In this document: piece by piece, positions 1-24,189 of the stretch
Layout: each line of letters begins with the position of its first letter
Position numbering within the stretch: position 1 is the first letter of the stretch
Made by a program: the position numbers and the translations under genes
NCBI RefSeq assembly: GCF_000315625.1
Contig: NW_005434588.1
Location: forward strand, 1-64,000
Source: Guillardia theta CCMP2712
Lineage: Eukaryota > Protista > Cryptophyta
Length of the DNA: 64,000 bases
Reading direction: 5' to 3'
Notes under the pieces: model-generated
Database searches by the model: none
The model's input: the letters and a program-made list of their open reading frames with translations, nothing else
What the model was told of the DNA's origin: nothing

Positions 1-2486
1 AAGATCGTTGAGGGATGCCTGTAGAGATTCAAGATGATGAGAGGGTTGCTGAGGGATGCTGGATGGCAGTGATTTTTCCTCTTCTTCGATGAAGGACCAT
101 TCGCAGGGCTTGATGGGTGGTTGAACGAAGGAGTTATATGTTTCAAGCAGCGTAGGGTTATTCTGATATTCTTTATATAGTAGGTTAGGATCACTGCCAA
201 GGAGTTGTGAGAGGATATTGTTTTTTTGTTTTGTAAGTTCGTTGTAATCTACATGAAGGAGGTGAGGGTGCTCAGCATTGAATTCGTCTAGTTTCAGTTG
301 CCAATCAATAGCAAGGAATTCATCAACGTGAGAGGGTCCTTGTGAGAAGATGGGTTGAACATTGATATCGATAGATTCATATTGATTCTGTAACTGCTGT
401 AATTCAGCCGAGAGAGCTGTCATATTAGAGTTGGAAGCGACAAGCTCAGAAGAACCGGAGGATTCATAATCAGGTTGTAGGAGTTGAGGGGGGATATCAT
501 GAAGGAATGAGTTGATATTGGATTGAAGAACGAGGGCGAGGTCGGTGTATTTTTTGAGGGCAACCTTCAACATGTTCTCGAGAGAGTTGAGGTTGTCGAG
601 ACCGGCTGCATGATCGATAGTGTTGATAAGTTCAGTATTGTGTATGTCGAGGAAGCTACAGTCATTGGATTGTGTGATCATGGAGTTGCGGAGGAAGGAG
701 TGGAGTGTTCCGACGTAGGAGATGATAAGGTCATTAGCAGATTTTTTTGTTGAGTTTGAGTTGGAAGAGGTTTATAGGATGTTTCATTAAGGAATCGTTG
801 AAATTCGAGGCAAGAGAAGAGTGAGAGGGAGCATTCATTTTGTGTAGTGTTAGGTTGAAGGGTGCGGCGATGGAACTTGCGATGTATCTTGAGGAATTCG
901 CCAGAGTGGAGTTGAAGGACGATGGTGGTGGTAGCGGTGCGTTGTTTATCGCGGATGATGCTAGCGGTGAGGGATGTGAGGGAATGATTGGATGCGATAT
1001 CGCCCCAAATGGCAAGGGTGATAGCGTTGAAGATGGAACTCTTGCCACATCCATTGGGTGCGTTGATGGTGTAGAGTTTGCGGTGGAGTTGTTCGAAGTT
1101 AATCCAAGAGGGTTGATCAGAGTAGCAGGAGATGTTATTCCATGTGATGTATTTAATGCTGAAGGATGTGTTATGTGCGGCAGGGGAGGTATCAGTTAAG
1201 ATGGTGTTATATAGGGAGGTGATCTTAGAGTTGAGGTCATTGATGGCGGTATGTGCGATGGAAGGGAAAGACGAGGTGGATAATGTGAAGCGTGAAAGGT
1301 CATTAAACCAGAAGGTCAATCTATCGATGTGGGGGGTTGTGAGCTGTAGTTCTTGAGACTGAGTCTTGAAGAAGTCGATAAGGAGTTTAGGGTCATTAAG
1401 GTCAGTGACATGATTAACTTGTGAGGTGAGGAAGTCAGGCCCATTGGGTTCAGAGGGTGATGGTTGTAGTTCTTGTAGGAGTGTTTCATCTCGAAAGTCA
1501 TGGGTGATGTTGTGTTGATGCAAGATCTGAAAGAGGAGTTGTTTAGCTGCGGTGTCGCATTGGCCTCTGATGGTGATGGAGACCTGTTTAGGGAAGAATT
1601 GGTTGTTGATGAGGAGATTGAGTGGGATATATTTATTTTTGTATCGGATGTTCCATTCATCATCGAGGAATGAGAGGACAATGAAGCCGAATGGGTTGTA
1701 AACGTTAAAGTTGTGTATCTTGCGTTCACGGAGGTCCCAAAGTGAGAAGCCGTGGTCGATGATGTCTTCGCCGATGTTCTGTTGGATAAGACTGCCAGAG
1801 TAACCCCAGAGTGTGCCGTATTTGTTGGTGCCATTTTGACGGAGGTGGATATCGCCAAGGAGGAGGAATTGGAAGTCCTTAGTCCATTCGAAGGGGTAAG
1901 TATGAACGGTGTCGTTGTTATCGGAGAGCCTGGATTCATTGAGTTTAGTGCCACCGAATGTGCCGTGGAAGAGAGGGACAATGAACTCAGGGTTGCCATC
2001 GAAGTCGAGAGGGAATGGAGGGAGCGTGCTGTTCCGCCCTGATCCAGAGGAAGAATCAAGTGTGTCTCTAACACTAACGGTTGTGAAGCCTACATTATCG
2101 ATTGTGAGGGTGGTGGTGGAATCGAGGATATGTAGGTTGGGCAAGCTGAAAGCGATGGATGAGACGAGTGAGGGTGCCTGTTGATCTTGCTGGAGGATGT
2201 CGTGATTGCCGGGGATGACGATGACGAAGGTGATCTTGAGCAGAATATCAAGGAGTGTCCTATATAGATCAAGACTGTAGGTAGAGACAACATCCTTGTT
2301 ATTGAAGACATCACCGGTGATGACAATGAGGGAGTTGTGAGGAGTGATATGTGGTTGTTCATGGAAGACCTTAAGGATAGAGTCATGAAGATTCTGGAAG
2401 ACCTGTTTGTATTCAAGGAATCTGGAGGAGTGGATATCGCCCTTGCGGATGTGGATATCGGAGATGTGGAAGATGTATTGGACCAT
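1..2486 (-). CDS. Mre11/SbcD phosphoesterase fused to Rad50/SbcC ATPase-coiled coil; frameshifted at 742-748; C-terminus outside window
   Basis: Phosphoesterase motifs HISDIH, VITGDVF, IPGNHD, LFHG, LLGDIH, YSGSL, then Walker A APNGCGKSSIFNAI. A second frame read by hand is open from 741 to 1 (SANDLIISYVGTLHSFLRNSMITQSNDCSFLD...), an SbcC Q-loop-like region followed by coiled coil. Confidence 0.88.
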
Positions 2487-2745
2487 AATGAGATTATAGA
2501 TAGGTTTTGATTAAGTGTTAATGGAGTGAATAAGTTTCTAATCATTTTTTGTGAAGGGAAGAAAGGTGCTTATGAAATGGCCGAATGAGTGAGAGTTGAG
2601 AGGATGAGGTGATGGTATTGCAGAAGATATGATATATATAAAGGCTTGAAGGAGGGAGGAGGTGGTTTTAGTGAAAGGGGAGGACAGAATAGACTAGGGA
2701 ATGTCAACAAGGATGAAGAGAGTTATTGGGTGTTGACTATGTGAA

Positions 2746-4043
2746 GGGTAGGACATGGCAAGCTGCGCTTGCTCGCCTGCGTGCTTCGCACTTGGCTATG
2801 GCCCGAACGAGTGATACAGGCATCTTCCAATGGCATGAGAGCGGTAAGGAATACGAACGTGTACCAAGAGAAAATAGAGTAGAATGTGAAATATACATTA
2901 TTTTTGATTATGATCAGGAGATGATATGATAAATATTGTTTATAAGGAAGGTGACTGCCATGCTAGAATGGGTAGGATATGGCAAGCTGCGCTTGCTCGC
3001 CTGCGTGCTTCGCACTTGGCTATGCCTCGAACGAGTGACACTGGTATCCTCCAATGAATTAAAAATGAATGATGCGTGAAAAAGATCATGACAGCGAGAG
3101 GATATGACAGACTATCATAACAGCATAATTTACACAATAAAGTGTATTGATGATGAGAGCCTAGTATATGTAGGTTCGACAACGCGTCAGATGATGCAGC
3201 GATGGTCGGAGCACAAGAAAGATTGTTTATTAGAGAAATCGAAGACATACAATTGCTTATTGTACAAGACGATGCGTCAGCATGGTGTGGACAAGTGGAA
3301 GATAGAACTGTATGAACGGTTTCCATGTAGTAACAGAACAGAATTGAGGAAGAAAGAAGGTGACATCATAAAGCAGATAGGAACCTTGAATGGCAAGGTA
3401 GCGGGACGTGGCAAGAAAGAATATAGTGAGGAGAATGCTGAGTATTTGAAGGAGTATAAGAAGAAATATGCTGAGGAGAACAAAGAGAAGTTGAAGCAGT
3501 ATCGTGAGGAGAACAAGGAAAGATTTAATGAGAGGAAGAGGATGAATTGGAAGCCCTTGACAGGAGAAAAGCAAGAAGCGCACAAAGCGTATTGTAAAGA
3601 GTATCATTTAAAGAATGCAGTCGTGGAGAGGGAAAAGTACAAGAAGTTTTATGAAGAGAATAGAGATAGGTTAAATGAAAGAAGGCGCGAACGTAGGCGA
3701 ATCAAGAAAGAAGCGATGGGGGCAGCTTCAAATGAGAAGAAAGAATCTGATGAATTAGTGGAAGATATTGGTAGACTTGCTATCAATCAAAAAAATGAAA
3801 CTGATTAAGTATGTATTGATCTATTATATTTTTATTAGTTTATGCTATTATGATCATAGTGATTGGACTCGACATGGCAAGCTGTGCTTGAATGAGTGAC
3901 CCTGGTAGTTTTCAATGTATATTGAGTGTGTAGACTAACAATAACTTTGTTAGGAATCTTGTTTTAGTCATTACTATGATCATGTGAATAAGTAAGGATA
4001 TGGCAAGCTACGCTTGCTCGCCATCGTGCTTCGCACTTGGCTA
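2746..4043. repeat. Dispersed ~50-85 bp hairpin repeat, 4 copies (~2746-2832, ~2970-3056, partial ~3871-3917, ~3996-4043)
   Basis: Core ATGGCAAGCTGCGCTTGCTCGCCTGCGTGCTTCGCACTTGGCTA recurs in the intergenic DNA on both sides of the GIY-YIG gene. Confidence 0.9.
3104..3808 (+). CDS. GIY-YIG homing-type endonuclease with K/E-rich helical tail
   Basis: SIIYTIK...VYVGSTT...QRWSEHK...LYKTMRQHG...W.IELYE...E...I...LN is the GIY-YIG pattern typical of algal large DNA viruses; intronless. Confidence 0.9.
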   Translation: MTDYHNSIIYTIKCIDDESLVYVGSTTRQMMQRWSEHKKDCLLEKSKTYNCLLYKTMRQHGVDKWKIELYERFPCSNRTELRKKEGDIIKQIGTLNGKVAGRGKKEYSEENAEYLKEYKKKYAEENKEKLKQYREENKERFNERKRMNWKPLTGEKQEAHKAYCKEYHLKNAVVEREKYKKFYEENRDRLNERRRERRRIKKEAMGAASNEKKESDELVEDIGRLAINQKNETD

Positions 4044-4046
4044 CCT

Positions 4047-4161
4047 CTGACAAATTTAGGGTATATTTGTCAGGTACTAATTATTTATTTAGCCAAATTT
4101 AGGGTATATTTGTCAGACTAGTCTAATGAAATTCTGACAAATTTAGGGTATATTTGTCAGA
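4047..4161. repeat. Three copies of the palindromic unit (T)CTGACAAAT-TTAGGGTAT-ATTTGTCAG(A)
   Basis: Copies at 4047-4073, 4094-4116 (partial left arm) and 4133-4161. Confidence 0.92.
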
Positions 4162-4197
4162 TTGGTCATGTAGGGTAATCCAGCCGGTACTCTGAGA

Positions 4198-6516
4198 GTT
4201 GCCAGGGACGGGGTCGGGCATGGAGGAAGCGAAGGAGGAGCGCAGTCGAAGGCTCGCCATGTCCGGGGTTCGAAGCCACTCGGTGCGATGAGCCGCGAAG
4301 GAGAGAGACTAGTGGAGTGATGGTCTGACATTCTGCTGTAAGATGGTAGGGAAACAAACATACAGATGCTGGACCTGGTTGAAACGACCCGGATCCAGCA
4401 CATACATTCGAGTGTTGCTGGAGGTGACGAGGGGAAGCTATCGCTTGCATGAATCCTTACAAGATTCTTGACAGATGAGTTGGGAGGATAACAAGATACT
4501 TGTTTGTTCGTCAGAGTGAGAAAGATCACCTTCTGCTCTTGCTCAGAAGTAATCGTGCCGGTTATCAGGCATGCAGATACTGCAGAGGTAGTTAAGTTGT
4601 GGGAAGCGAATGGGGCAGAAGCAAGAAGTGCAATGGTGAGACCTGTGCACAAAAGATTTTCCATGAGTATCTTGGAGGATTCACAGATAATGTGAGAAGG
4701 TGATGTTCAAAGAGGACGAAAACGATCTATGCAAGTCAAGAATGCAAATCTCTTCACTCGAGGTTTACTGTTTCAAATTGTTGTGAGAGTGAGAGCTGTC
4801 GTGTGCAGGGCTTTCTCTATGTCATGTGCCCCCATAACCCTCAGGATAACTCCTCCGCACACCGTCACTGTCATGATGGTGGATGCCTTCAGAGCTTGCG
4901 AGAATGTAGACGATGGATACAAGTCTCGATTGATCGTCACAGAGAGGAGAGGGAAAGCGAAGAGAAGAGGAGAATGGTTGAGCCCCTCTCTTTTCTTGTC
5001 GTTCCCAACTCTCTCTCACCGTAGCCTTCAGATGGAGGAAGGTCGCTATTGTGGACCGGACGTCTTGCGGAGAATGTGTTATCAGGGGCCGTGCATTGAG
5101 AACTGGAACAGAAGTCGCCTGAGGTCAGCCACATGCGATGAGTCGCACTGCTTCTCCTTACGTCCAGTCAGTGCTCTTCCTCCCGCTGTGCTCAAAGTCA
5201 CGAGCATCAAGCGGCTCTTCCTCGAAAGCAACGATCTTGCTGAACTACCGCACCAGCTCCCTTCTCTGACCTCCCTCACAGAGCTCTGGCTAGGATACAA
5301 CAGCATACGTGATCTGGTCATACGATTCTTCTTCTTTCAAAGGGCTTGACGTCAGTCAGGATTGCGATGCTTTCAGCCGGATAGGAAGAGAGGTGCCCCT
5401 ACGCTTCCTCTCCCTCGAAGGAAATAGAATCGAGAAGGTTCCGAGAGCTTTGACGGACTTCACTTGCCTGCAAGAGCTCCGGCTCTCTGCCAATGGTTCT
5501 CCTCCTCCTCCTCCCCTTCCTCGCGCTCGTCTCACCCTCCTGTCTGCTCGCAGATCTTCAGAGCCTCGACGCTGGGAGCTGTTGTGGCCTGACAGCCTTG
5601 ACGGTGCTGGACTTGAGCAGCAACCGGCTCAAGGCTCTGCCCGAGGACTTGGCTTTGCTGACGTCGCTACGGTCTCTATCGCTCGACAACAATCAGCTGA
5701 AGGCACTGCCCTGCATGCAGGACTGGACCTCCTTGCTCAGGCTCTCAGCGTCAAACAATGAGCTTAACTGCCTTCCCGCGACTTTCAGCTCGCTCGTCTC
5801 TCTGCAGACCATGGTTGTCAACAANNNNNNNNNNNNNNNNNNNNNNNNNNNNNNNNNNNNNNNNNNNNNNNNNNNNNNNNNNNNNNNNNNNNNNNNNNNN
5901 NNNNNNNNNNNNNNNNNNNNNNNNGATAACGGACTGCACCAGCTTTCTTCTCTCACGTCGTTGGAAGCGAAGATGAACGAGATCGCGGAGCTATCTGTGC
6001 CGGGTCTCGCAGGGACATGCATGTTTGAGGGCCTGGAGGTGTTGAATCTCAAAGGGAACAAGCTTCTCTCTCTCCCGCAGGAAGTCTTGCACCTGCATCG
6101 CCTCAAAGAACTAGACCTCTCTTACAACCTCATCTGTGAGGCGAAAGATTTCCTCAGCCTGGGGGGCATGCAGCTGGACAAGGTGCTGCTGCAGGGAAAC
6201 CCGTTGTTCAAGGACAACGCTGAGCTGAGAGCGTTCGAAGATGATCATCAAGGTCTCGTCTCCTTCATTCGGTCGCAAGTTGAGATGCACATGGAGAGAC
6301 GGTCCTTGACAGATCTCCCTGCCCTCGTCTTGAAGAGCAGAGAGCTGCGACACCTCTTCTTGTCTCACAACCTGCTGCTCAAGTTGCCGGAGACCATGAC
6401 ATCTCTGACTAGTTTGCAAACTCTGCATGTAGACAACAACAGGCTCATCTTGTTGGAGCGATGGATCTCCGAGCTCCAGTCGCTCACGGATGTGAATCTC
6501 AGTGTTAACAATCTTC
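4198..6516 (+). repeat. Left arm of a ~2.3 kb inverted segmental duplication (partner 29188-31503)
   Basis: Identical ORF translations in mirror orientation. Breakpoints read at 4198/31503 and 6516/29188. Confidence 0.95.
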
Positions 6517-19584: not shown

Positions 19585-22500
19585 ATGGAAAGCAATCAGG
19601 TTTCTCCCGAAGTAGGAATGATTGCTGAAGACATCAGCGGCTCTGCTGGCTCGATCCGCGATGAAGACATGGAAGTATCCGTGGCAATCCAATCGGACTC
19701 CACTCCAGTTCTCATCTCCCCTGGGATCAACGACAAGATTTTACTTCCGACTTCGTCCGAATGTATACTCAAATGCCAGGGAACTACATGCAGCGAAGCC
19801 TCGAAAAGAGTGTCATTTTCCAAAAGAGACCATCGCTCGTCCTATTTTCGCAGGACCCCATCTCAGCAGCGATGGCGCTGATTGGGTTTCGGTTCTTGCT
19901 CTTTGCCGGAGGGTTTGCTTGGATTGTTGCAATAGCGCTCAAGGTAAAGGAGGTGCACGGGTCGAGGTATTTCGCGTACCTGATTGAGGAGAGAGTGCGA
20001 CAGTTTTCCATGGCAGACATGACGGAAACAGGAAAGCTAGCATGTGGTTGGGAGTCGTTCTTGGAGGTGTTTTCCAACTTCCTTGTTGGTGTGGTTGCTA
20101 TGGCTGCAGGAATATTGAGTATGGTGAGTGTGAGGCTGGTCAAGCAGGTGAGAAGTTGTGTGGAGAAAGATGTTGATTGCTGAAGTTCTTTGGCTTGCTT
20201 GCAGGTCATCGTGGTGGGTGGACTGATAGATGCGGCTTGCAACTTGTGTGTGTTCATACAGATGATGCTCGCGGTACGCAAAAGGACGGTGATGGGGACG
20301 TCATGGTATGTGTTCTTAATCGCCATGCTCACGGTGAGAAAGAGGCATGCAAGTTGTCAAGCATGTTGATTGAATCTGGTATTGGCAGGACTTGTTGATA
20401 TTTCCCCTGCCTCTGATCCGATGGGAAGCATACACAATTGAGCTGATAGCGGCGGGTTCGCTCATTCGAATCATTAGCATTGCTGCAAGCTCGACAGTAC
20501 CGTACAAGTGCCTTGCTATCTTTGTGTTCTTTTCGACGTTGCTTGGATTGCGAGAGGGGCTTCGGAGAAGGACGAAGAACAAGGCAGCGGGTCTCGGAGA
20601 GCAGTTCGACCAAGAATGGAGGCAGTTGAGAGATCTGGATGCGATACTGAAGCTCAAGGAGGCTGTCAGCCGAGCACAAGTTAGATCAAGAACGACTCAA
20701 GGAGGTGGAGAAGGAGGAGGAGGGGGAGCCTCGTTCACATGGCTCAGACGACAGTCCCTGCTGGCTCCTCTACCATCGACCTCTACGTCTTCGTCACAGC
20801 CGAGCATGATAGTTCAGTACGCGCAGGAGTGTCAGGGCAAGGATCTAGATCAGCTGTATGCCCAGGCGGTACTTGTGTCCCCCTTGTTCTTGAGCAAGGT
20901 ACAGTCGTGGGCGGAGGCGAGCGACGGATATTTTCTCATGAACATCCCGTCGGCAAAGAGGAAGCACTACCTTCGATGGCGAGACTGCAAAGGCGACAGC
21001 TCCAAGCTTTCTCGAATCAAATGGGCGTCCATCAAGAACGCTAACCGAGCCATCGAGAAGATTTTGCTGTTGTGCAATGGCGACACGTCGAAGCTGACGG
21101 ATATCGTGCGGCAGACGATCGTGTTCAAAGAGCTGCGGCAGCTTGTCGAGTGCGTGGAGGTCATCATCAATGACTCGGAAGTGGAGGTGGTGAGGATCAA
21201 GAACCGGCTCGACCCGGACTACGACGCGTCGACGTCGGGAGGCTACAGGGACGTGGGGATAAACTTGCGGGTGATCCACGAGGGGGCGAAGAGGTGGGGG
21301 GTAGCTGGGCACGTCTGCGAGTTGAGACTGACGGTACAGTCGCTTCATTCCCTCATGGACTCACAGAATCATACGCTGCATTTGTCGATGAAGAATGTTC
21401 TTCGTTTCAGGCAATCGCAAGGGGATGAGATAACCATGAAAGAACAGCAAGGAGAGAGAATGCAGGATAGGAGGAGACGGTCGTCGTCGACGTTGGAGAC
21501 ATTGCTTCCTACCCACATGTCAAGCTCCATGGGTTACTCAAAGTCCCTCGCGCAGGAGAAGTCCGACATTGCGCTGCTGATCTACAAGAGCATGTATCCC
21601 GGCAACATTCTGGACAAATACCTGACGTCGTCTGGTCATGGTGTAGCCAAAGCTGACACGACAAGCATTCTGTACTCGTCCCACCCGCTAAAGAATGTCC
21701 TGCACAAGACTCTGTTCCAGCTGCTGCTGCTGCTTGCGGGGATTGGTTTTATCATCCTTTGCAGCAACAACTTTCGTTTAAAATCACTCTTCACAAATCA
21801 CATTGTACCTTTTGGGCACGCAAGGATCACATTTGAAGGGTATGTGGACGCTAACGTCTCTATCAAAGACCGTGGTATGACGATCGAAGACTTCCTTCTT
21901 GTCAAAGATACATGCCACGTGTACAACTGGACTTCATCCGTGACAGTCGCGAACAAGGTCTTCTTTACATTCCCTCATGTGGTCTATCCCAATGGCTTGA
22001 AGTTTAAGCTGACTCCAGCGCTCATCTCGTACCTCAAGACAGATGCGCTCGCTATCGACTATCTGAGCGCGGAGGGCATTGATGACGTGACAGTTGCAAG
22101 AATGGAATGGCAATCAGTCTCTCCTTCTACGGTCAGCTGCAAACGGTTTCCCTCGTTGCCTCTTTGTCATTCAGAATTTTTGCTTCATGCCGACGAATCT
22201 CTTCTTATCGACTTGCGCTTCACCTGGCAAGCAATCTGCATATTCCTCATTGCGGTGTTTCAGATTTTATGCTGTCTAGGAGCCGCATTCTTCGCTCGGC
22301 TCGGAAAGGTTCGGCTTGCAAAGTTCGCGTTTACCTCGGCCTTCCACCTCGTCGGGCTTTGTGAGATCTTCACTGCTTTGTCCCCAGAGTCTCTGTATGG
22401 CAATTGGAAAGACTTTTACATGGCATGGGGAGTCCTCGACGTGTGGGTGGGTCTTGTGGTTCAGTTCCAAGAGCGCTACATGCTCAAGGCCTTCGTCGTC

Positions 22501-23493
22501 TACTGCACGATCACGGCGTTCTTGCCTCCTCTAGCTCAATACAATTGGGATGCGTCCAAGCTCAAGGAGTCAGACATCGGGTTGAGCAGCCTAGTCTTGC
22601 TTGCTCTGGTTATCTTCTTCGTGTTGAACAGAAGGTTCATCGTCTACAAGTCTCGGCGGCAGATCAGAGGAGACCAGAAGATGTACGACGACTGCTGGAA
22701 GGACTTGCTATCCCGGGAGCAAACTGAGCAGCTCTTGAGCTCCCTCAAGATCACCTGCGGATGGGTAAGGCCGCAGCCAGCGCTGCAGTTGAAGATCTTC
22801 GATGCCTTGTGCGAGGTTGAGTCGACGATTCTTGACCCGCTGGAAAGCGTTTTGAGAAGACAAAAGAACAGCAGCTTTGCTCGAACTTACTTGAAGCGTT
22901 CAAAGCTGACGGTCATGAGGCAGGACAGGGAGATTGAGTCCCTCGACCAGCTGTACGCTCAGGCGATTTTGTTAGAGCCCATGTTTTTGAGCAAGGTTCA
23001 GTCATGGGCAGAGGCTAGTGACGGATGCTTTCAGGGGTTGGAAGGAAGCCTCATTCGCTGGAGGGAGTGCGCAGAAGAGGCTGAAAAGGCGTCACAGGTC
23101 AAGTGGGCGTCCATCAAGAACGCTAACCGAGCCATCGAGAAGCTCGTCAGGTCTTACTTTGGGAGAGTCTCGAAGCTCACAGACGTGGTCCGTCAGACGA
23201 TCGTGTTCAAAGAGCTGCGGCAGCTTGTCGAGTGCGTGGAGGTCATCATCAACGACCCGGAAGTGGAGGTGGTGAGGATCAAGAACCGGCTCGACCCGGA
23301 CTACGACGCGTCGACGTCGGGAGGCTACAGGGACGTGGGGATAAACTTGCGGGTGATCCACGAGGGGGCGAAGAGGTGGGGGGTAGCTGGGCACGTCTGC
23401 GAGCTGCAGCTGCTGCTGGAAGAGTTTGTTGCGCTGAAATCAGCGGAGGGGCACAAGAGATACGTGATCTTTAGAAACTCTAGGTGTGAATAG
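19585..23493 (+). CDS. Multipass membrane protein with two RelA/SpoT-like (SYNTH-fold) nucleotidyltransferase domains
   Basis: 1033-aa final exon with two copies of IKNANRAIEK...D(I/V)VRQTIVF...RIKNRLDPDYD...GGYRDV.IN...GHVCEL(R/Q)L. Upstream hydrophobic exons are joined by introns ~20148-20204 and ~20334-20388. Confidence 0.8.
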
Positions 23494-24189
23494 CAACAGA
23501 GAATTGAGGAACAACAGGGAGGGAAGTGAAGGAAAGGATTGAGTCAACGGTAACCTTACGGTGACAATCTCTGCATATGATGTCACGGAATCAGAATAAA
23601 AAATCAGCGAAGAGTGTTTCACATGAGAAACCAAACAGATTCGAAAATCAACCGAATGATACTGTGATCTATTCGATACACTTCCACCTCCTTTCACTAT
23701 ATTCTTCTCTTCCACCTTCTCTCCATCCTCTCCTTTCCTTTTCTACCACCTCGTAGAATTGCTCCTATTTGCCTTTCTCTCTTCTCTAATCCCCTGTCTT
23801 AATTCCCCCACATGTAGACGATGAACCTTCTGTTCAACACGAAGAAGACAACCAGCGCAAGCAGAGATGAACGATGACATGCAGGAAAATCTTCTTCCTT
23901 CCCCTTCCTTTTGGCGTTCAGAATCGCATTTCTTTAAAAGATCAGCAAAACATATTGCAATGGAAAAAGCATTTCAGTAGTCATCAGTCCTCATAGAGAT
24001 TAATCAGAGCTGCTTCGAAAGAAGAAAATAAAACACGAATACTGCAAAAGCTTGGAATGCGGGAGAGTAGGGCTGTTGTTTGTTCTGTCAGTGGCCAAGA
24101 AAATGCTGTTGCTGATGTTTTCTCAAGAAGTTCTTGCAAGTCCAGTTTCATCTCTGCATTGTCCACGAGATCCGATGGTATTCCTGTTT

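Follow-up and report, generated by a model that had tools for sequence, protein, structure and literature searches.

What does a eukaryotic cell do with a membrane protein that carries two copies of a RelA/SpoT-like synthetase domain? The question is raised by GUITHDRAFT_115559 of the cryptophyte Guillardia theta CCMP2712, a gene on the plus strand at positions 19585-23493 (contig C86) of a stretch of 64,000 nucleotides, here called the window. Its product of 1250 aa is labelled "hypothetical protein" at NCBI and "Uncharacterized protein" in UniRef. A first-pass annotation, made from the letters of the window, had described it as a receptor-like protein with two synthetase domains and proposed a nucleotide-messenger function. 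The domains, their membrane setting, their evolution and the size of the family were analysed here by structure prediction, profile searches and comparison of paralogues.

Domain repeats and fold assignment

An open reading frame (ORF) of 1033 codons runs without interruption from 20392 to 23493 (+), and over the last 1033 residues of GUITHDRAFT_115559 its product matches at 100% identity. Two segments of this ORF, D1 (residues ~145-335) and D2 (residues ~844-1033), each ~190 aa long, are 67% identical to one another (BLASTP E 3e-86). The motifs K..R..EK, D..R..I, IKNR, GGYRD and CEL are conserved columns across 23-34 homologues. These motifs, together with ELRL in D1, ELQL in D2 and a different tail on each domain, had been listed in the first-pass annotation, and all were located in the sequence; the tails read NHTLHLSMKN in D1 and GHKRYVIFRNSRCE, followed directly by the stop codon, in D2.

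The fold of D2 was modelled with AlphaFold (predicted local distance difference test score, pLDDT, 85.5; predicted template modelling score 0.81). A Foldseek search with this model returned RelA/SpoT homologue (RSH) synthetases only, among the top 50 matches listed (E 4e-5 to 1e-2). The top structural scores were those of the small alarmone synthetases (SASs) RelQ and RelP, at 12-16% identity only; CapRel and FaRel2 were also among the matches, and the highest structural identity, 20-22%, was to Tas1. When a profile of 34 domains was run against all PDB sequences, exactly two proteins were matched: Tas1 (E 5e-4, over Syn1-Syn2, with a hidden Markov model (HMM) alignment of only ~43 residues) and Bacillus subtilis YwaC/SAS2 (E 7.6e-3, across 114 residues). 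In the profile alignment, K60 of the family falls on the Lys of RVKS in YwaC, K68 on the second Syn1 Lys, D82 on the Asp of HDIAG, KNR on KDY, GGYRD on NGYRS and CELQL on AEIQI, so that the family motifs align residue for residue with Syn1-Syn4 of a solved SAS, catalytic Asp and Glu included.

Direct searches were empty: a Pfam scan of the ORF gave no match to RelA_SpoT (PF04607), to HD_4 or to a cyclase domain, and phmmer of the ORF against PDB gave no match, and the RelA/SpoT fold is therefore visible only by profiles and structure. A few short members of the family are named "RelA/SpoT domain-containing protein" in UniRef; homology at the level of the domain is thus not wholly new to databases, while the window gene itself is unlabelled. 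On the predicted structure and the profile alignment, D1 and D2 are assigned as divergent members of the SAS-type RSH synthetase fold, in which a pol-beta-like nucleotidyltransferase core is joined by helices specific to RSH enzymes. The protein resembles a SAS in having synthetase domains and no HD domain; it departs from the small, soluble, single-domain form of a SAS in having 1250 aa, ~12 transmembrane (TM) helices and two domains.

The fold and the profile alignment both agree with the original proposal that the two domains are RelA/SpoT-like synthetase domains. That proposal had named lack of a structural match to the synthetase fold, or loss of the catalytic Asp and Glu among homologues, as grounds for giving it up; a structural match is present, and Asp and Glu are kept in every copy of D1 and D2.

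Membrane architecture and ectodomain

Hydropathy scans and the helices of the AlphaFold model gave the layout ~6TM-D1-TM-ectodomain-5TM-D2, that is, two membrane blocks (M1 and M2) each followed by a domain. Five G. theta paralogues (29-85% identity) have the same arrangement at ~1250 aa, as does a Hanusia phi sequence in EukProt (28% identity), in agreement with the M1-C1-M2-C2 order proposed from the letters. The beta-rich loop of the ectodomain (modelled aa ~473-606) holds three conserved cysteines (C507, C582 and C591) and the sequons NVS and NWT. Basic clusters follow TM6 (REGLRRRTKNK) and TM12 (NRRFIVYKSRRQIR).

Six helices lie between D1 and D2, which places both domains on the same side of the membrane; the basic clusters, by the positive-inside rule, and the cysteines and sequons of the loop suggest that this side is the cytosol. 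D1 and D2 are thus predicted to lie on the cytosolic face, with the beta-rich loop extracellular or lumenal. By language-model features the ectodomain scored 0.85 to the F5/8-type-C (galactose-binding-like) class, which is sub-threshold.

The motif GD...[FY][DN]..W..L stands after both membrane blocks, and suggests that the entire unit of membrane block, juxtamembrane segment and domain was duplicated. M1 and M2 match at only E 0.16, and no homology between them is claimed; whole-unit duplication has no evidence other than the repeated juxtamembrane motif.

Conservation, gene conversion and selection in D1 and D2

Alignment columns of D1 and D2 were compared over 23 proteins. Thirty columns are invariant in D2 and 12 in D1. 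Those of D2 include K, R, K, D..R, KNR, YRD, N, CEL, GH and a terminal R..E, and the Gln of Syn4 is present in at least 90% of sequences; D2 retains every residue aligned to the SAS catalytic core, plus an invariant tail specific to the family. The invariants of D1 comprise both Syn1 lysines, Asp, RD and CE. At the position two residues after the Glu, D1 has Arg in 19 of 23 proteins, Gln in three and Val in one; the Syn1 Arg or the GGY tyrosine is missing from D1 in some paralogues, and D1 is without the GHKRY tail.

Inside one protein the cores of D1 and D2 are on average 0.69 identical (up to 1.00), compared with 0.47 for D1-D1 and 0.53 for D2-D2 between proteins. Cores closer within than between proteins point to repeated intragenic conversion. 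After CE the relation is reversed: the tails of D1 and D2 are 0.24 identical within a protein, and those of D2 are 0.56 identical between proteins. As the tails stay distinct despite homogenisation of the cores, the last ~40 residues seem to carry the functional difference between D1 and D2. The family is a clear case of intragenic concerted evolution, ending at the tail, where the two domains appear to part in function.

The extreme C-terminus, GH[KRQS][RNL][YH].....R[ND].R[CGA]E before the stop (window 23449-23493), was found in 23 of the 24 paralogues with a recovered long frame (L001-L025); 17 paralogues end in RCE, and L019 ends in IGE. This pattern of residues suggests a functional role, which might be active-site closure, docking or sorting.

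Ratios of nonsynonymous to synonymous substitution rates (dN/dS) were 0.07-0.17 for D2, 0.15-0.19 for D1, 0.34-0.41 for the ectodomain (the fastest-evolving folded part) and 0.24-0.26 for the whole gene. Both D1 and D2 are under purifying selection. The two domains had been interpreted at first as a catalytic and a pseudo-catalytic member of a pair. The asymmetry stands, in that D2 is the more constrained and D1 has Arg in place of Gln and no GHKRY; the pseudo-catalytic half of the claim is weaker, since purifying selection acts on D1 and no copy of it has lost the catalytic Asp or Glu; D1 need not be inactive. By its residues, D1 is best described as a maintained, divergent and partly degenerate copy.

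Family size and distribution

The G. theta genome was searched with a domain profile, which gave 109 matches, 80 of them strong. Same-strand pairs with a spacing of 2.05-2.19 kb define 29 two-domain loci, and 26 of these have the two domains within a single open frame of ~1020-1500 codons. A single domain is present at about 20 further loci; these paralogues resemble the second half of the window protein alone (TM, loop, 5 TM, domain). The family in G. theta totals at least 50 genes. The first-pass annotation had called for a genome-wide count of paralogues; the loci with two domains number no fewer than 29, and those with one domain about 20.

Canonical RelA_SpoT and HD_4 domains were found always together and at only two G. 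theta loci (C47 and C24), which are plastid-type long RSHs. The window protein is unlike these two HD-containing genes of its own genome, in line with the contrast drawn earlier between it and the canonical algal enzymes.

Relatives of D2 numbered 34 by word search and 130 by profile search. Named sources were Guillardia, Hanusia, Hemiselmis, Rhodomonas and Cryptomonas, together with the green alga Cymbomonas; the remaining relatives came from metagenome and sequence-archive collections (JGI, ENA, Logan). The family is spread across the cryptophytes. The Cymbomonas sequence (P0136, from C. tetramitiformis) is a partial homologue, 35% identical, and may mean either that the family is not restricted to cryptophytes or that DNA of prey or a contaminant was sequenced.

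Several paralogues lie near one another. Three two-domain genes and one single-domain gene fall within ~50 kb at G000:C30:477000-530000, two paralogues are 6.4 kb apart at G000:C1:833000-843500, and at G000:C206:46000-57500 two paralogues whose ORFs are of unusual length (~1500 codons) stand as an inverted pair, head to head.

About 20 weaker matches belong to a class of membrane proteins in G. theta that is more distant, with a C-terminal RSH-like domain that is split by an insert of ~110 aa and carries the canonical motif E[VL]QVR. Examples are L026 (G000:C229:6500-13500; ORF 1046-4195, +) and L028 (G000:C100:13000-19500; ORF 3031-6264, -). The N-terminal part of L026 (aa 86-330, 'FFLSYRVSTDG') scored 0.93 to TIR-domain clusters by language-model features, and no Pfam or PDB HMM match was obtained for it; L026 is a possible TIR-TM-RSH-like protein.

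Gene model

The coordinates of the gene and its features are collected in Table 1. Two short GT..AG introns link the main exon to upstream exons that encode four further hydrophobic helices. The main open frames of most paralogues start just 5' of an FPxP motif, which is consistent with a common intron at 20334-20388.

Table 1. Features of GUITHDRAFT_115559, in window coordinates
Feature	Positions	Strand	Basis or remark
Annotated gene GUITHDRAFT_115559	19585..23493	+	100% protein-to-window match; 5' end uncertain
5' coding exon (reading frame of ORF 19761), TM1-TM2 and conserved N-terminal motif FVRMYTQ..LFSQDPISAAM	19728..20147	+	tblastn of paralogues P0036/P0037
Intron, 57 nt, GTGAGA...CAG	20148..20204	+	
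Exon, TM3-TM4	20205..20333	+	
Intron, 55 nt, GTGAGA...CAG	20334..20388	+	
Main exon, 1033 codons and stop, unbroken	20389..23493	+	
TM5-TM6 of membrane block M1, then basic REGLRRRTKNK and juxtamembrane QFDQEW	20425..20574	+	
D1, first RSH/SAS-fold domain (assigned): K..R..EK, D..R, IKNR, GGYRD, CELRL; no GHKRY tail	20830..21414	+	
D1 core, 237 nt, conversion tract	21088..21324	+	96% DNA identity to 23170-23406
TM7	21709..21771	+	hydropathy, model helices
Beta-rich loop, ~147 aa, presumed extracellular or lumenal	21778..22218	+	AlphaFold2 strands, pLDDT ~85
TM8-TM12 of membrane block M2	22225..22662	+	hydropathy, model helices
Basic juxtamembrane segment (NRRFIVYKSRRQIRGDQKMYDDCW...) and linker to D2	22663..22929	+	GD...[FY][DN]..W motif repeated as after M1
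D2, second RSH/SAS-fold domain (assigned): K, R, EK, D..R, IKNR, GGYRD, CELQL, GHKRY..FRNSRCE-stop	22930..23490	+	
D2 core, partner of the conversion tract 21088-21324	23170..23406	+	

The annotated exon 1 (19585-19809) and intron 1 (19810-19853) bypass a stretch in the frame of ORF 19761. This stretch (~19728-19853) is conserved as protein in paralogues (FVRMYTQ.PG..MQR...LFSQDPISAAM), and between ATG 19585 and the conserved stretch there is a one-base frame change near 19722; together these make ATG 19761 an alternative start. This conservation makes an error at the 5' end of the public model probable, and ATG 19761 may be the true start.

Contigs from independent public runs span most of the locus. 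One of them, X7 (2011 public run, depth 14; window 21022-21321), has 10 differences from the window between 21093 and 21175, inside the D1 core. Their probable source is reads of the near-identical D2 core or of a paralogue that the assembler merged; an allele is less likely.

Proposed function and alternative explanations

The reading that we prefer, at somewhat better than an even chance, is that of a receptor-like membrane enzyme in which D2 is an ATP-dependent pyrophosphokinase making (p)ppNpp and D1 is a divergent, probably regulatory copy. D2 would move the beta,gamma-pyrophosphate of ATP onto the 3'-OH of a purine nucleotide to give a (p)ppNpp-type product. Candidate acceptors are GTP/GDP, adenine nucleotides (as for Tas1) and tRNA (as for CapRel and FaRel2); Tas1 is the nearest solved sequence, which makes adenine nucleotides a serious candidate, though by analogy this is a weak inference. 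D1 would probably bind nucleotide and regulate D2, or have an altered chemistry. Gating of the enzyme would fall to the membrane block and the variable ectodomain, giving a receptor-type nucleotide synthetase.

Several results weigh against this enzymatic reading. PF04607 was missing from the scan of the ORF, and among 29 relatives no family member reached its gathering score, weak matches being seen in five (best E 0.002). Syn1 is without the canonical Arg of RxKS and Syn2 reads D-x-x-R instead of D-x-x-G-x-R, departures by which the substrate or chemistry may differ from that of (p)ppGpp synthetases. No stand-alone RSH-type hydrolase (HD_4) that could turn off a cytosolic alarmone signal was found in the G. 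theta genome. Support from RNA is thin, with 24 short reads at the locus from one RNA run, mostly at 23269-23562 and none of them carrying a splice junction. A prediction of the D1+D2 complex, listed among these points, scored 0.00 and is evidence neither way.

A more specific version of the receptor synthetase would have an extracellular or lumenal ligand act at the variable ectodomain and membrane block to release a (p)ppNpp second messenger into the cytosol, with D1 as an allosteric pseudo-site; such cryptophyte receptor-type alarmone synthetases are a tentative suggestion, more doubtful than the enzymatic reading itself.

Among the alternatives, the one that survives best is an immune or suicide effector, in which a membrane sensor, for example on infection, triggers a drain of ATP via (p)ppApp, or pyrophosphorylation of the tRNA 3' CCA that blocks translation. 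In its favour, the best sequence match is Tas1, and the structural matches include CapRel and FaRel2; large size, clustering, fast diversification and concerted evolution, all seen in this family, are typical of receptor families of the immune type; a dedicated hydrolase was not found in the genome; and the TIR assignment in the distant RSH-like class provides a lead only, by language-model features. The structural scores, however, do not part toxic from housekeeping SASs, RelQ and RelP being at the top; the TIR assignment is without HMM support; dN/dS gave no sign of positive selection; and no antitoxin- or immunity-like partner was seen, none having been searched for. An effector of this kind is considered unlikely.

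Less probable again, and by some way, is a non-catalytic nucleotide sensor, both domains being pseudoenzymes and the membrane part (a transporter, channel or 7TM-like protein) being the effector. In D2, the equivalents of the Syn1 lysines, of GYR and of the catalytic Asp and Glu are invariant across 23-34 sequences, and pseudoenzymes rarely retain a full set of catalytic residues. Structural matches of the 7TM-like type were under the noise level for helical bundles.

The first-pass annotation had compared the protein with transmembrane adenylyl cyclases, and a composite of that kind would have D1 and D2 in a head-to-tail dimer with one active and one degenerate regulatory site at the shared interface. 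The 6TM-C1-6TM-C2 layout is identical to that of the cyclases, one domain is conserved and the other degenerate, and RelQ-type SAS enzymes oligomerise and possess an allosteric nucleotide site, which also counts in its favour. Yet in the solved RSH enzymes RelP and RelQ each active site lies within one domain, so that the likeness is in topology only and the cyclase-like mechanism is not upheld; there is no class III cyclase homology, and single-domain paralogues exist. The complex score of 0.00 is listed against the composite as well, though it is evidence neither way. We regard the composite as very improbable.

An annotation or assembly artefact, with two genes misread as one, or a decaying duplicate or pseudogene, could draw on the doubtful 5' model and the very low RNA coverage, and is nevertheless largely refuted and hardly to be credited, given a 3.1-kb frame without a stop, the single-frame two-domain layout at 26 of 29 paired loci and in Hanusia phi, a whole-gene dN/dS of 0.24-0.26 and the independent contigs over most of the locus.

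Novelty and implications

From eukaryotes, three kinds of RSH protein are known: soluble ones in plastids, the Mesh1 hydrolases and the products of a small number of divergent SAS genes that occur sporadically (PMC3153485). In the open literature, no paper was found that links Guillardia or cryptophytes to RelA/SpoT proteins of the present kind, and no description of a eukaryotic membrane-bound SAS. What is new is the setting: an enzyme superfamily already known appears in a tandem membrane architecture that resembles a receptor, and one eukaryote has expanded it massively. One alga has at least 50 genes for membrane-anchored SAS-fold domains, most of them in the tandem 6TM-C1-6TM-C2 form and apparently facing the cytosol. 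These genes suggest that a eukaryote has a receptor-type family for nucleotide signalling that had not been described before.

If the domains are active, pyrophosphorylated nucleotides, or pyrophosphorylated tRNA or another target, would be receptor outputs outside the plastid, and the family would be a new enzyme class for receptor-coupled nucleotide signalling or for protist immunity. The family bears on the open question of the source of alarmones in the eukaryotic cytosol, and offers concrete, expressible domains for testing.

Comparison with known systems

Compared with RelQ/SAS1 and RelP/SAS2 (YwaC) of Firmicutes, to which identity is 12-16%, the window family falls under the PF04607 threshold, is without the RxKS Arg, has D-x-x-R for D-x-x-G-x-R and ends in a C-terminus of its own, GHKRY..RCE. 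RelQ and RelP are small soluble tetramers, whereas the domains of the window protein are a tandem pair on a eukaryotic membrane protein of ~12 TM helices.

Tas1/Apk1, the (p)ppApp synthetase toxin of P. aeruginosa (PDB 6ox6), is the best sequence match (E 5e-4; 20-22% structural identity) and has in common with the window family the motif K-x-x-x-R-A-x-x-K-x-x-x-x-Y-x-G-D-x-x-x-x-x-D-x-x-R-x-x-I. Unlike Tas1 and the exported SASs (PDB 8vx3; PMC12691689), the window protein is eukaryotic, membrane-integral and tandem, with no secretion-system delivery domain; no immunity gene was seen, no search having been aimed at one. From the toxic SASs CapRel and FaRel2, which are tRNA pyrophosphokinases, it differs in the lack of a pseudo-ZFD or antitoxin element and of a toxin-antitoxin context.

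With the plastid long RSHs (RSH1-4/CRSH), represented in G. theta by the two loci with HD_4 and RelA_SpoT, the window family shares the superfamily. The long RSHs are soluble, contain HD and score clearly above Pfam thresholds; the window family has no HD, is membrane-integral and is ~25x more numerous. The divergent eukaryotic 'divRel[S]' of Dictyostelium, Aspergillus, Gibberella and diatoms are, like the window family, synthetase-only RSHs outside the plant clades; Atkinson et al. 2011 (PMC3153485) reported them as sporadic single genes and described neither a transmembrane nor a tandem architecture for them.

The class III adenylyl cyclases share the layout of two 6-TM blocks, each followed by a homologous cytosolic domain, one of the two more degenerate. 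Their catalytic fold is unrelated, the domains of the window protein having been assigned to the RSH fold with no cyclase Pfam match; the RSH active site is not at a domain interface, and M2 of the window protein has a large ectodomain. If the receptor-synthetase reading is true, the family would be the RSH counterpart of the transmembrane adenylyl and guanylyl cyclases.

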